Positions 45,830-52,194 of a DNA stretch of 64,000 nucleotides are shown in pieces. The stretch comes from Guillardia theta CCMP2712 (lineage: Eukaryota; Protista; Cryptophyta). The notes beneath the pieces were generated by a model that worked only from the letters and a program-made list of their open reading frames with translations, did no database searches and was not told where the DNA came from. Made by a program: the position numbers and the translations under genes. Positions within the stretch are counted from its first letter, which is position 1, and every line of letters starts with the position of its first letter. The stretch spans positions 126,760 through 190,759 of the forward strand of contig NW_005434673.1 of the NCBI RefSeq assembly GCF_000315625.1, read 5' to 3'.

Positions 45830-46659
45830 GCCGGTGATGCTTCACCTTGTTGTTACCTCGTTCGCATCAACCTGATCGTTCATGTTCAGCATGTTGGCAA
45901 CGTGAGCAGAGAGCGCGACTGCAGTTTCTCCATCTCTGACGGAACATGTCTGGTTACTAGTGGCTGCTCTAATCCCCTGCGGGGCGTCTGCTGAAACCTT
46001 CAACTTATCCTCCTCCACGTCAAACACAAGACTGAGGTAACACAACAATACACCCTTCTTCACTCTGATGTGCTTCCTTTCCCACTTGACTTCACTTTCA
46101 CATACATCCGCTCTGCCAGATTCCCATTCCTCTCATTCTCCTCTCTCCCTGGAATCTCCGAAATATCATCCTCCCTCCCCTCCCTCCCCTCCCTCCCCTC
46201 CCTCCCCTCCCTCTCCTCTCCTCCCTCCCTCCCCTCCCTCCCCTCCCTCCCCTCCCTCCCCTCCCTCTCCTCTCCTCCCTTCCCCCCCTCCCCTCCCTCC
46301 TTCTACGTCCCTCCTCTTCCTGCTTCTTCTCCTCCCCTCCCTCGTCCCTCCTCCTCTCCTCTCATCTTCCTATTCCCCATCTTCTGCCATGCCGCGTCAG
46401 CGTCCTCGCCGGACTGTCAAGTTGAGAATGAGGGGGATGAGGACGGGCTCGGCCCTGCCCGGCCGGGCCCCGCGGCGCGGCGCGGGCGCGGGCCCGGCCG
46501 CGGCCCGACTGATGCATGCCAGGGACAAAGTTCACTCAGGAGTCCGAGTCTGATGTGATATTGCCAGTGCCCCGAAGCATTCAGGAGCCAAAGCATTCAA
46601 TGTTGCACGGTAATGAGTTAATGAAAAGTGTTGGTAATGAAATGAATAGATTTGAAGCA

Positions 46660-47750: not shown

Positions 47751-48357
47751 GTGATGAGTACAGCTCGATGTCTCCTCCTAGAAGCGAATGATGAGTGAGG
47801 GTGGCTATGACAAGAAATGAGCTGTTTCAATGGGTACACACATTTCCTTCAATGACAAGATTACGTGAAAGGAGGTAAAACAATTCAAGAAGTCAAGAAG
47901 TCAGAGATCGAAAGTGAGGACAAGTACACCAAGGAAACAATCCAAGCATTAAAATTGTGTGGCTTAGCATGACCAAGATCATACAGGACAAAGGCAGGAA
48001 AATCAGCAAGGATACCAAGGAGAAATTGAAAGAAGGAAGAAAAGATGAAAAGAGAACAGGGGAGGAAATCCTAGGATCCTTGTGAGGTGAGCGTTCAGAG
48101 GTTTCCATTGGAGGAGGAGGTGCGTAACTTGCTGTTAATAGAATGTACATCGGGCTAGTGCAGCAGGTAGGACAATGCGGCAAGGTGGAGCAAGAGCAAA
48201 TGGGAAGGAGAGGAGGTGAGAGATATGACAGAGAAGGAGGCAACGAGGAGGAGGAGGAGGAGGAGCTGCGACAGTAGCGACATTGAAAGAGGTACGTAAA
48301 AGGATAAGCCGCCATAGCTATTAGCTAAACGACACAAAACATAAAATTTCAAAATTC

Positions 48358-48479
48358 TAAATTTTCCGTCGAAATTATGGATCATTGAAGACCCACACGC
48401 CAATATTTCCTTGTGTCTGACTCGTACTTCATCCTTTCTATGAAGAACAGGTTGAAGTATAACCAGACCCATGTGTGAT
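48358..48479 (-). ncRNA. Putative Fanzor omegaRNA (scaffold ~48479-48377, putative guide beyond)
   Basis: Immediately 3' of the Fanzor stop. Nested stems TACTTCA/TGAAGTA and GTCTGG/TCAGAC, plus terminal hairpin TGGGTC-TTCAAT-GATCCA. G-U pairs form only on the Fanzor sense strand. Confidence 0.6.
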
Positions 48480-50408
48480 TCAAGGCCGTTTCAGAAAATC
48501 TGGTCGTGCTGGTAGAGACATGTAGCACAATAGAATATTCATAGCAGCATTGACATCACGAGACTTGATACGGTTTTGAACACAATTGGTGGATCTGCAC
48601 CATTTCAAACCCCGCACCACTGACACTTCGTCAGCAAGTATACCATTCTTGTTGATTTGTTTGCGTCTCAAATCATACAATTCTTGATGACATTGATTGC
48701 AACATTTTGTCGTTCTGTATTCATCAACTGCCGTCACCTCGAAGAAGTTCTGACATCGCCTTTTGATCCATTTTACAGGCACTGACTTCTCTCCACGCCC
48801 AGTACAACCGAATGATGCATCACCGTATGCAATTATTGGATTTTGATCTGTCCCATTAAATTTCATCTTCTTGAAGAACGTATCAATCGCCTTGTGTTTG
48901 TGGATGTAGTTATCCATCTTCAGGCGTGCGAACTTGTTTTGACAATTGTGTTCGAACAGGATCTCGCTTAGTCTCACCACGGTGTCGATGTATCTTTCAA
49001 AGTGATCCAACCGAGACGTTTTTGCTGACACTCTTGCAATATCGTTTGATTCTTCTGTTATGCCTTGTCTCCATTTTTCTAACTTGGCGTTATTCCGAGT
49101 AATATGAGACTCATGATAGTACTGCCTTCGAGTATATCGATACTGCTTTGGTTTTTCTTGACCAGGTATTTGCTCGACACCGCATATCAGTACATTGCGA
49201 CCAGGATCGATTGCAATAACTCGTCTTGATGACACATCACAATCTCTTGTTTTGCTTTTCTTTGTAGTAGTATTGTCTGTCTCATTGTGTATTCTCTTCT
49301 TGAACGTCACACAGAGTGCGACTCCGTCAGTCTGTATGCTATCAACTGTCCCTTTCTTTCTCAAATTTGATTGTAGCTTCAACACCGACAAGAATCGCTT
49401 ATGTTTTTGTTGTATGAACTTTTTCATGCATTTGCTTTTCCCACCCTTTGAATATTGCAACAGACCAGATTGATCCATAATGTAGAATAAACCCCAAATG
49501 TCTACGCGAATAAATTGTTTGCGTATCTGAAAAATCGGAGCGATCGTGTATCGATCAGATATATCATGAATCTCCAAAAACCTCAGAACCGAAAAATGGT
49601 ACTTGACAAGATTTGGCATGTGTAATTGCATCCATTTTTGCTGTTCAGGGTTTTTCTTGATTTTGTCACGGGCCCATGACAAGTTATAATGATTGTCCCA
49701 TCCAATGATCTCTTTTTGTTCCCTTATGAAATCAATGACATCCTGTCTTTCGAGAACACGAGTTTTTGGTGGAAAGCTCCATCCGTTTACTGTATTCCGT
49801 ATATCCTGTATCTCCTTTTCTGAAGAAATCCCATTGAGCTTTCCCCATTCCTTTATGTATCTAGTCTGTTTTTGTCCCATCGTATAGAATATGTAATTTT
49901 GGAAATTTGTTGCATATTGATCAGCAGAATAGTACAGTACTCGAATATCCCCTTCTTTCCTGCGTTGTATTGGTAGATACTTGTTCCCTTTTTCTTGCCA
50001 AAACTCGTCTAAAATATCAAACTGAATTGCATTACCTCTGCGTTTTTCACCCATCAGAAAACAGGTCCGAAAGAAAACTTTCTCTCCACCATTGGTCTTG
50101 ACCGTTTCTTCTTGCATCCCTTCTTCTTTTTCTTTGTCTGTTACTTTTCTAGTACGATTGTATATCTGATCAAACAGCCTTGTAATGTACGTATCATCAC
50201 CTTGCATTGAATCCTTCTCAAAACACCATAACAATAGATGATTGAAGATGATGCTACCTCGATGGCTTATTTTGCTTATGTGTTTCACCCAATCATCAAT
50301 CACACCGATCATTGTGTGATGTTTGAGATGTTTTTTCAAACACATCTTGACAGTCGTCTGTGAATCAGAACAAGACTTTCTTTGTTTTCCTCTTTTCCTT
50401 TTCCCCAT
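48480..50408 (-). CDS. Fanzor1 (eukaryotic TnpB/OMEGA RNA-guided RuvC endonuclease), 642 aa, intact
   Basis: RuvC-I VIAIDPGR (D codon 49206-49208), YGDASF, rearranged RuvC-II VDEYRTT (E 48720-48722), Zn finger CNQC...CRSTNC, RuvC-III SRDVNAAMNI (D 48555-48557). Also SIQTDGV upstream of RuvC-I, a basic N-terminus, and an intronless AT-rich ORF. Confidence 0.93.
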   Translation of the reverse strand: MGKRKRGKQRKSCSDSQTTVKMCLKKHLKHHTMIGVIDDWVKHISKISHRGSIIFNHLLLWCFEKDSMQGDDTYITRLFDQIYNRTRKVTDKEKEEGMQEETVKTNGGEKVFFRTCFLMGEKRRGNAIQFDILDEFWQEKGNKYLPIQRRKEGDIRVLYYSADQYATNFQNYIFYTMGQKQTRYIKEWGKLNGISSEKEIQDIRNTVNGWSFPPKTRVLERQDVIDFIREQKEIIGWDNHYNLSWARDKIKKNPEQQKWMQLHMPNLVKYHFSVLRFLEIHDISDRYTIAPIFQIRKQFIRVDIWGLFYIMDQSGLLQYSKGGKSKCMKKFIQQKHKRFLSVLKLQSNLRKKGTVDSIQTDGVALCVTFKKRIHNETDNTTTKKSKTRDCDVSSRRVIAIDPGRNVLICGVEQIPGQEKPKQYRYTRRQYYHESHITRNNAKLEKWRQGITEESNDIARVSAKTSRLDHFERYIDTVVRLSEILFEHNCQNKFARLKMDNYIHKHKAIDTFFKKMKFNGTDQNPIIAYGDASFGCTGRGEKSVPVKWIKRRCQNFFEVTAVDEYRTTKCCNQCHQELYDLRRKQINKNGILADEVSVVRGLKWCRSTNCVQNRIKSRDVNAAMNILLCYMSLPARPDFLKRP

Positions 50409-50550
50409 ATTTGATCAGGGTGAACGCGGGAGCTTCGGAAGGCGGGAATGAGGGAGGGAGGGAGGGAGGGCGGGAAGAAGGGAGTGATGGAAGGCGGGAG
50501 GGAGGATGGGAGGGAGGGAGAGAAGGCGGGAGGGCGGGGAAATCTTTACA

Positions 50551-50733
50551 GAGCCACAAACCTGGTACCCACCCCTACTCAAGTTCGACAGATAAACAAA
50601 CGGGTAGTTAGACTTCGGATGAAGGCGGGAAGGCGGGAAGGCGGGAAATATTCGAAGTTTGTTGAGCCACAAACCTGGTACCCACCCCTACTTCTACTTT
50701 GATAGATAAACAGACGGGTGTTTAGACTTCGGA
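50551..50733. repeat. Two imperfect ~69-bp direct repeats upstream of Fanzor
   Basis: GAGCCACAAACCTGGTACCCACCCCTACT...GATAAACA.ACGGGT..TTAGACTTCGGA at 50551-50619 and 50664-50733. Confidence 0.9.
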
Positions 50734-51170
50734 AGAATTGATTTGTACCGGTGGATTTGCAGGGATGTTCTTTTTTTTTAATCACAACATTCTATATTCT
50801 CGTTGCTCCTTTGTTGTTTTACCGTTCGGGGTTTGCACCACACCGCGATTTCGACTTTTTTTTTGAGATTCTAATTTTTGGGTCACCATTGGTCATAGTG
50901 TGTCACTTAACCACTATGTAAAACGTCACAACCCTACCCGGTCTCCACAATGCTAGGGAAGATTGAGGGTAGGGTCTGATTGTATGAGAGGCCATCGGCA
51001 TGAATGTTAGTACCAATTAAATCAATATGTATGGTACATATATTATTTTAAAATATCTCTATCAATTAAAGTACAATTTGTGATGTGGTACAAAGGGTTA
51101 TACTCTGTAAATGATAAAACATTTAATAAAACTTGCTTGCAAAATAATAATATGAATAATTATTTATACA

Positions 51171-51196
51171 ATATATATATATATATATATATATAT
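51171..51196. repeat. (AT)n microsatellite in an AT-rich spacer
   Basis: Seen directly. Confidence 0.95.
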
Positions 51197-51291
51197 TCCT
51201 AAAAATTGGCAATCAATCTGATCAGGAACAAACATAAAAATAATATGTTTTTGGAGTACATAATTTAAAAACAAATATTTCTCGAAAATAC

Positions 51292-52194
51292 TTGTACGTT
51301 TTTAAAAATTCCAACCCAGTGCCCATGCCCCACTCTTCCCAGCCAGTGGAGGCGATGGCGGTAGCGGCTGGAGATGCAGCTGATCCTCTTCCTCCTCCCG
51401 AGGACTCAGTATGCGACGATGTGAATCCGAAGAAGAAGGCACGGCTGAGGACCATAGGGACGGGCAAGGGTAGGAAGATGTTCAGGCCTCAGGAGCTGGA
51501 TGTCCTGGCAAACGTCGTACACGAGGTCCGGCCGCTGCTGGCCATTCACTGGGACCGTGTTGGGGATGTGTACAACTCCCATCCCTCCATATGCTTTCCT
51601 AGGGATGCACATTCGCTCAGGACCAAGTACATCTCAGTGCTGAGGGACGCGAAGAAGGGTGTCGAGGACGACGAAGCGAAGTCGGCAGTGTACGAGAAGT
51701 TTCTTGCAGCTGAGAAGGCCATTGAAGCGCGAGCAGCTGCAGGTGATATCCGAGACTTGCAGGACGATGATAGCGCCCTCGATAAGGAGCATGCTAGAGC
51801 TTCCGCCGCAATTAAGGGCTGCATGAAGAGTGATGCAGAGGGCGTTTGGGCCATCCTTCAAGCGATCAAGGCCGAGCGGGAAACATGGAAAATTCTTGAC
51901 GAAGCCAGGGAGGAAGAAAGGAAAAAGAGGGAAGATGCAAGGGAGGAAGAGCGCAAGAAGAGAGAGGAGGAAAGGGAGGCAGAGAGGAGAAGACGAGAGG
52001 ACGAGAGAGAAGAGCTGAGAAAGAAGCGAGAAGAAGAGCGCGAGGCACAGAAAAGAAAAGAGCGTATGATCAGAGATGAGGAACGGAGAAAGGATCGGGA
52101 GCTTGAGAGACAGGAGAGACAAGCTCTCTTGAACGTTATGATGCGTCTGATCGGCGAAGATGCGTCAAAACTGGAGTTTGCTAAGCAGAAATGA
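51292..52194 (+). CDS. Intronless Myb/SANT-like (DUF6818-type) protein with long E/R/K coiled-coil tail (true ATG probably slightly downstream)
   Basis: GRKMFRPQELDVLANVVHEVRPLLAIHWDRVGDVYN...PRDAHSLRTKY three-helix pattern, followed by a charged helical tail. Confidence 0.65.
   Translation: MYVFKNSNPVPMPHSSQPVEAMAVAAGDAADPLPPPEDSVCDDVNPKKKARLRTIGTGKGRKMFRPQELDVLANVVHEVRPLLAIHWDRVGDVYNSHPSICFPRDAHSLRTKYISVLRDAKKGVEDDEAKSAVYEKFLAAEKAIEARAAAGDIRDLQDDDSALDKEHARASAAIKGCMKSDAEGVWAILQAIKAERETWKILDEAREEERKKREDAREEERKKREEEREAERRRREDEREELRKKREEEREAQKRKERMIRDEERRKDRELERQERQALLNVMMRLIGEDASKLEFAKQK

Follow-up and report, generated by a model that had tools for sequence, protein, structure and literature searches.

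An intact Fanzor1 of an apparently uncharacterised family, carried by a young multi-copy element of Guillardia theta

To characterise a candidate RNA-guided nuclease in the cryptophyte alga Guillardia theta CCMP2712, we analysed a 64,000-nucleotide (nt) stretch of contig NW_005434673.1 (positions 126,760 to 190,759, forward strand), hereafter the window. Its segment 48319-50913 is very probably a copy of a young multi-copy element whose sole gene encodes a Fanzor1, an uncharacterised paralogue of the alga's published GtFz1, and which fits a model of guided cleavage and one-ended copying. The protein has a complete Fanzor1 architecture with an intact D401/E563/D618 centre. Comparison of copies defines the ends of the element and its Y-ATA target, and reveals recent spread with frequent 5′ truncation and a kept 3′ end. 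The features of the gene are as follows.

48480-50408, minus strand: Fanzor1 open reading frame (ORF), 642 amino acids, intronless (ORF listing, alignment, profile, model and fold).
50376-50408, minus strand: basic N-terminus MGKRKRGKQRK (translation; disordered in the model).
49206-49208, minus strand: codon of D401 (RuvC-I, IDPG), invariant in 79 homologues and aligned to the DPxK/R of SpuFz1, PpFz1 and GtFz1.
48720-48722, minus strand: codon of E563 (relocated RuvC-II glutamate, VDEYRT), invariant together with G529.
48582-48701, minus strand: zinc-finger/TNB region, C570-x2-C573 ... C604-x4-C609 (sequence; weak PF07282 match).
48555-48557, minus strand: codon of D618 (RuvC-III, RDVNAA), the canonical aspartate where GtFz1 has N658.

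An earlier note, made from the letters of this DNA, had described an uninterrupted, intronless and AT-rich 642-residue ORF that starts with MGKRKRGKQRK and contains three RuvC residues and a four-cysteine zinc finger, and every one of these features was recovered. The ORF runs from ATG to stop without interruption, and its GC content is 0.37-0.42, against ~0.50-0.58 for most of the surrounding DNA. Because D401, G403, G529, P544, E563 and D618 are invariant among 79 aligned homologues, the motifs IDPG (D401), VDEYRT (E563) and RDVNAA (D618) are not chance matches. The canonical RuvC-II position is occupied by Gly529, and E563 stands just ahead of the zinc finger, whose cysteines are arranged as CxxC (C570, C573) followed by CxxxxC (C604, C609). 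This zinc-finger/TNB domain lies between RuvC-II and RuvC-III in a region modelled with high confidence; it gives the only Pfam match of the protein, PF07282 (TNB), which is weak (E 2e-4, below the Pfam cut-off), and NCBIfam returned no match. Residues 1-11 have a predicted local distance difference test (pLDDT) score below 50 in the AlphaFold model, and their basic composition resembles a nuclear localisation signal, a function that we predict for them. No intron is required, since the model is confident over the whole length.

To place the protein among RNA-guided nucleases, we combined profile and structure comparisons. An exhaustive search yielded 1,756 relatives, of which 632 had E ≤1e-10. 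Searched by itself against the PDB, the window protein found no match, and only the family profile reached Fanzor1 chains: built from the 79 homologues, it matched just PpFz1 (5e-30), SpuFz1 (6e-28) and GtFz1 (1e-19), with the DPG, DE(Y/F)xT and RD(x)N motifs of the three lined up and the DPxK, DEY and RD motifs of SpuFz1 aligned to the catalytic residues of the window protein. The AlphaFold model on the same alignment (mean pLDDT 90.8, predicted template modelling score 0.89) has the bilobed TnpB/Cas12-like fold of WED, REC, RuvC and TNB domains and lies nearer to Fanzor1 than to Fanzor2, TnpB or Cas12. The top seven Foldseek matches in the PDB were all Fanzor1 (E 1e-19 to 8e-17, template modelling (TM) score 0.54-0.72), in the order SpuFz1 (0.67-0.72), PpFz1 and GtFz1 (0.54-0.57); the remainder, Cas12f, Fanzor2 and TnpB, all scored at or below 0.34 (Fanzor2 9b0l, 0.20; TnpB 8h1j, 0.21). 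On the predicted model, SpuFz1 is therefore the closest structural relative.

These comparisons, which the earlier note had proposed with SpuFz1, GtFz1 and TnpB, bear out its assignment to Fanzor1. The protein combines the Fanzor1 fold with a RuvC triad in which glycine replaces the canonical RuvC-II glutamate and an alternative glutamate precedes the zinc finger, and its carrier is a 2.6-kb element that has defined ends and occurs in multiple copies on nuclear contigs. The shifted glutamate had itself been taken as a mark of Fanzor1; it is not specific, as all Fanzors and a subset of TnpBs share it (PMC10530073).

The same comparisons settle whether the gene is the GtFz1 already characterised from this alga, a question that had been left undecided. 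The supplement of the original study lists only two G. theta Fanzor loci, on scaffolds 7 and 348, with GtFz1 on scaffold 7 (PMC10432273); the published protein recognises the target-adjacent motif (TAM) TTAAN, has a non-canonical N658, and its omega RNA overlaps the last 17 codons (PMC10432273, PMC11423790). We recovered the GtFz1 gene at G000:C7:894431-896503 (L065:2932-5004) as a 690-residue ORF that starts MSNIRIVKRKAKGFF and contains WWNRNVAGAF; the published omega RNA start falls 52 nt ahead of its stop, in agreement with the 17-residue overlap. BLASTP aligned the window protein to GtFz1 at 22% identity over 320 residues, pairing D401 with the aspartate of the GtFz1 DPGK motif and D618 with N658. 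The window gene therefore differs from GtFz1 in locus, length (642 versus 690 residues), catalytic residue and sequence, and is a paralogue.

That it might nevertheless be GtFz1, to which it is tied by organism and protein family, or else a domesticated single-copy host gene, is next to impossible: the first is refuted by these differences, and the second conflicts with a gene that is multi-copy, has transposon ends and evolves neutrally. The 90%-identity cluster of the window protein contains members from ENA, Logan and JGI only, none of them named. Since the gene differs from GtFz1, the other locus in the supplement is on scaffold 348 and the cluster members are unnamed, the window family appears to be uncharacterised and, on sequence, distinct from GtFz1.

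Copy comparison resolved the gene into a compact mobile element, here family A, with the following parts.

48319-50913, minus strand: whole element, 2,595 bp, comprising a 5′ non-coding region, the Fanzor1 ORF and a 161-nt 3′ region (bounded where at least seven copies stop matching).
48319-48337, minus strand: right end, ...GTGTCGTTTAGCTA + ATA (identical in 17 copies, one mismatch in four more).
50898-50913, minus strand: left end, TGGTTAAGTGACACAC, an imperfect inverted repeat of the right end (copy comparison).
50914-50918, minus strand: target motif C-ATA-G by the left end, the predicted TAM (Y-ATA-N in seven of seven copies).
50409-50897, minus strand: 5′ non-coding region of short repeats, with ~90-bp units that differ in number between copies (copy comparison).
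48319-48545, minus strand: predicted omega RNA scaffold, from the 3′ end of the ORF through the 3′ region to the right end (fold z −3.2, low variation).
48299-48318, minus strand: predicted guide-encoding flank, the first 20 nt past the right end (modelled on SpuFz1 and GtFz1; each copy has a different flank).

Within 48319-50913, the ORF listing and Pfam revealed no transposase gene and no second ORF with a family match. Read in the sense of the ORF, the 3′ (right) end is ...GTCGTTTAGCTAATA, present exactly at 17 places and with at most one mismatch at four more, beyond which the flanks differ at every copy. The 5′ (left) end starts TGGTTAAGTGACAC and is preceded by Y-ATA-N in all seven copies that have a left end; all 21 right ends read A-ATA. 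One of the intact copies (L003, G000:C30:445891-448609) has its right end in an assembly gap, written as N, and carries the left-end variant ATAT + CGGGAGGGTGACC... A viral-insert origin was considered for the low-GC ORF and dropped, as the 2.6-kb unit that contains the ORF has copy-defined ends that meet a different flank at every locus.

The genome-wide copy search that the earlier note had called for returned seven intact copies at ≥99% identity, namely the window copy on C1, two on C26, and one each on C30, C14, C78 and C6. Two otherwise full-length copies, on C62 and C64, are frameshifted, and there are many further fragments. Furthermore, 99%-identical copies occur on two metagenome contigs of a single ENA project, with right-end flanks that match none of the insertions in the reference. 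In the reference, these flanks correspond to places on C102 and C47 that lack the element and read ...GCC-ATA-AAAG... and ...TGT-ATA-ATGT..., placing CATA and TATA exactly at the junction. The 5′ junction of one of the contigs (L061) maps to C46, also empty in the reference, with the join 9 nt past ATA; since L061, which unites C46 and C102 flanks, could be two insertions wrongly joined in assembly, its junctions were counted separately. The L068 contig has a flank that matches nothing in the reference. Flank identity to the reference is ~98% for C102 and C46 and 86%, including an 8-nt gap, for C47, so the ENA samples represent related strains or species.

Two or three insertions at reference-empty sites indicate that the family moved recently, which, with the seven near-identical intact copies, agrees with the recent insertion that had been claimed for the window gene. 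Among eight aligned copies, the ORF has undergone 34 substitution events, 23 non-synonymous and 11 synonymous, a ratio close to neutral, as expected of transposon copies after insertion. Variable sites number 38 over the opening 1,704 nt, whereas the final 392 nt contain one (~7 expected), and the last 57 nt are also identical in a 94%-identical subfamily.

The copies are one-sided. An exact-end search found 21 right ends and seven left ends, and 150-nt probes found 23 and 12; right ends prevail because many copies are 5′-truncated. At least 12 loci retain the right end but are cut at scattered points, keeping from 26 nt to 1.1 kb, whereas a solo left end occurs at one locus only; in three "full-length" copies the first 7-21 nt are missing. 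Some truncated copies are flanked by target duplications, for which chance would yield ~0.03 matches per locus: L055 has an 11-bp duplication directly after CATA, L058 a 9-bp duplication after GATA around just 47 nt of right end, and L056 a less clean 9-bp duplication; the junction of L039 shows microhomology. An excess of 3′ ends with scattered 5′ truncations is one mark of one-ended elements of the CRe-1,2,3/Helitron2 type, and family A has it; variable duplications after ATA, the further mark of such elements, are found on a minority of its truncated copies.

The structure of the ends bears on a different account, in which family A would be an ordinary non-autonomous cut-and-paste element, moved in trans by a DDE transposase with 3-4-bp ATA(N) duplications, and 5′ truncation would be later decay. 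If the element is taken to stop at ...GCTA, its ends form an 11/16 inverted repeat (matched by eye, and weak as evidence). ATA lies on both sides of full-length copies, with the fourth base in agreement in four of six, so that with the ...GCTA end ATA(N) resembles a 3-4-bp duplication; the right-hand ATA could belong to the element or to the target. The terminal motif GNCGTTTA-NNNN-WTA also occurs in another family of the genome, family C, whose end is GGCGTTTATCTATTA, and in a relative of 37% identity that comes from a different sample, ends GTCGTTTAAAGGTTA and has a clearer inverted repeat at its start; the motif is thus kept beyond family A. Against this account stand the strong excess of right over left ends, the 9-11-bp duplications that directly flank truncated copies and that a fixed-stagger transposase does not make, and the failure to link any transposase to family A ends. 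We consider it unlikely.

The truncated copies could also suggest RNA-mediated copying, with element transcripts retroposed by the reverse transcriptase of a long interspersed nuclear element. 5′ truncation, duplications of variable length and a microhomology junction are classic marks of target-primed reverse transcription, and the intronless ORF would fit as well. Such an origin is very improbable, given that none of the 21 3′ junctions has a poly(A) or simple repeat, that the 3′ end is constant to the nucleotide, and that the target is a specific ATA and the 5′ end defined.

How the nuclease might serve the element was modelled on characterised systems. SpuFz1, encoded by a single-ORF element without transposase, has the TAM CATA (PMC10432273), and the motif at the left end of family A predicts a similar TAM of about YATA. 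In both SpuFz1 and GtFz1 the guide is the 3′ flank (PMC10432273); by analogy with these and with TnpB, we predict an omega RNA and guide-dependent cleavage for family A. The 222 nt from the last codons of the ORF to the right end fold better than shuffled sequences (z −3.2). An omega RNA would be transcribed from the 3′ end of the ORF through the right end (48319) into the flank and bound by Fanzor1, the guide of the window copy being flank 48318-48299. The resulting ribonucleoprotein (RNP) would cut double-stranded DNA beside a YATA-type TAM, that is, the empty site, made up of YATA and the former flank; an occupied site, whose right end reads A-ATA, would for that reason escape. Cutting may aid the persistence or spread of the element, and copying seems to begin at the right end and frequently abort.

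A bolder version of this model dispenses with a transposase altogether. The Fanzor1 RNP would break a YATA target, and host repair would copy the element in from the right end, often aborting and thereby leaving 5′-truncated copies and variable duplications. Fragments with only a right end would then be further sources of guide RNA, comparable to the "ghost" loci of Spizellomyces punctatus, with A-ATA protecting occupied sites. We regard this version as quite unlikely.

Several observations weigh against the model of guided cleavage and one-ended copying. Duplications are seen in just three or four of the ~12 truncated copies, and the terminal inverted repeat is weak (11/16). A genome search for the Helitron Rep domain (PF14214) found none, and its controls gave no match either, so absence of Rep cannot be concluded; because that search, of uncertain sensitivity, was empty, the Helitron2 analogy stands without its enzyme. 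Two consensus folds of the 3′ region showed no compensatory base pairs, the copies being too alike, and the window copy alone bears G517F, a loop change caused by a GG>TT double substitution. RNA data comprised two assembled runs, X1 and X2, labelled probable RNA, and a raw-read run, X17, of which ~6% was read. Positions 49494-50945 are uncovered in X1 and X2, with just a trace depth of 0.15 at 49494-49614 in X17, and none of the three runs showed an omega RNA or correct-sense reads at the right end. A pile of reads at 48319-48361 was rejected as omega RNA: its reads map to the plus strand, terminate in poly(A) past 48361 and continue into the flanks of other copies, and thus represent host transcripts from those copies, mainly a 5′-truncated one on C82 (L053, G000:C82:64573-65465). 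The family A right end seems to act there as a polyadenylation site for a host transcript.

These data allow another account, in which the element is young yet already a silent fossil, its ORF intact since the copies are too young to decay, with no transcript and no nuclease today. The near-neutral substitutions (23 to 11), the frameshifts on C62 and C64, the private G517F and the lack of RNA cover over the 5′ 0.9 kb of the ORF (49494-50408) all speak for it. Yet seven copies remain intact and the 3′ region hardly varies; furthermore, the reference and the environmental samples differ in their insertions, a polymorphism indicative of recent family activity. Moreover, the ORF cannot be called silent, because RNA sampling is too thin (a fraction of a lone raw-read run) and contigs cannot show absence. 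This account is possible, although we doubt it.

Rfam gave only a chance-level snoRNA match, and P0002, an 87%-identical protein considered for RNA comparison, proved useless, since the copy behind it is frameshifted and its 3′ region shortened. At 48905-48960 on the plus strand, antisense to the Fanzor ORF, one X1 contig (depth 61) and a single raw read show a 54-nt GT..AG joint. It resembles an antisense intron, whose transcript probably traverses a truncated copy at another locus.

Comparison with characterised systems places family A closest to Spu-1/SpuFz1 of S. punctatus (PDB 8gkh, 9ceu-9cez). SpuFz1 is the best structural match, and both are single-ORF elements of ~2-2.6 kb with short inverted ends and no internal transposase; many ORF-less loci keep the 3′ RNA region in each (ghost loci in Spu-1, 5′-truncated copies in family A), and the CATA-type motif beside the family A left end recalls the CATA TAM of SpuFz1. 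The two proteins nevertheless share just 16-17% identity, the 11/16 inverted repeat is far weaker than the 30 nt of Spu-1, the ORF-less loci of family A are one-ended truncations whereas Spu-1 ghosts are two-ended, and the RNA and TAM of family A are predictions. GtFz1 (PDB 9cer-9cet) comes from the same genome and shares the Fanzor1 architecture with the rearranged RuvC-II glutamate; a four-base-plus-N TAM is plausible for both, but TTAAN differs from the predicted YATA(N), and the omega RNA scaffolds are unrelated (PMC10432273, PMC11423790).

The copying pattern is closest to that of CRe-1,2,3, Chlamydomonas reinhardtii Fanzor1 elements ascribed by Bao and Jurka (2013) to one-ended rolling-circle copying by Helitron2 (PMC3627910). 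Both show overabundant 3′ ends, frequent 5′ truncation, insertion just past a fixed short motif, and full-length copies without long duplications beside truncated ones with variable duplications (~7-19 bp). They differ in target (TTTT there, ATA/YATA here) and in the intronless ORF of family A; moreover, CRe-1,2,3 are non-autonomous Helitron2 elements, and family A is likened to them by its copy pattern, not by end similarity to a verified Helitron. TnpB of IS200/IS605 (ISDra2; PDB 8h1j) shares the RuvC and zinc-finger core, a right-end guide RNA and a TAM equal to the left-flank motif, the same homing logic that we propose for family A. Its fold match is distant (TM 0.21-0.34), the window element has no TnpA partner, and the window protein belongs to a eukaryotic nucleus, with a larger REC domain and a basic N-terminus.

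Beyond family A, the genome contains at least two further Fanzor1 families. Family B is represented by L012 (G000:C201) and L013 (G000:C72), whose open copies of 594 and 640 residues are 80% alike in DNA; their protein is 42% identical to that of the window and has the canonical RDVNA motif. A hairpin, CAATAGTCA.TGACTATTG, lies near the point where the similarity of the two copies ends. Family C (~46% identity in the C-terminal half) has at least six near-complete copies at 97-99% identity (L024-L030; G000:C38, C57, C244, C98, C23, C99, C87) and a sharp 3′ end that resembles that of family A; because its C-terminal motifs are not in one frame, it is probably intron-bearing. In a Logan contig of 2,276 nt (L060, SRR20069373), which encodes a 37%-identical Fanzor1, the ends are mutual inverted repeats (CCTTTAAACG.C); the contig looks like a complete element, with inverted ends clearer than those of family A.

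The surroundings of the window copy hold three further features.

51160-51205: (TA)n microsatellite, in an AT-rich stretch (50930-51290, GC ~0.32) just beyond the left end and before the next ORF.
51292-52194, plus strand: ORF of 300 residues, without Pfam family, that has a long tail of Arg/Glu/Lys-rich repeats; probably expressed, as X1 and X2 contigs start at 51345.
46068-46558, plus strand: overlapping ORFs with PPSPPS repeats in a GC-rich stretch (0.60-0.62).

Collectively, our analysis shows that the window gene is genuine and intact and belongs to an uncharacterised Fanzor1 family, in an alga whose only studied Fanzor is a distant paralogue. The role that Fanzors play for their elements in eukaryotes, and the means by which Fanzor elements without a transposase move, are open questions (PMC10432273), and family A is a compact case in which to approach them, in a culturable alga from which one Fanzor has already been purified. 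It offers seven intact copies, a predicted YATA TAM, a predicted guide for each copy, a canonical aspartate where GtFz1 has asparagine, occupied and empty alleles of the same sites, and a one-ended insertion signature. The window nuclease is also one more candidate editor, with a predicted TAM like that of SpuFz1. The value of the finding lies in this natural history, with its predicted TAM and guides, empty sites and one-ended copies, rather than in a new principle or kind of system.

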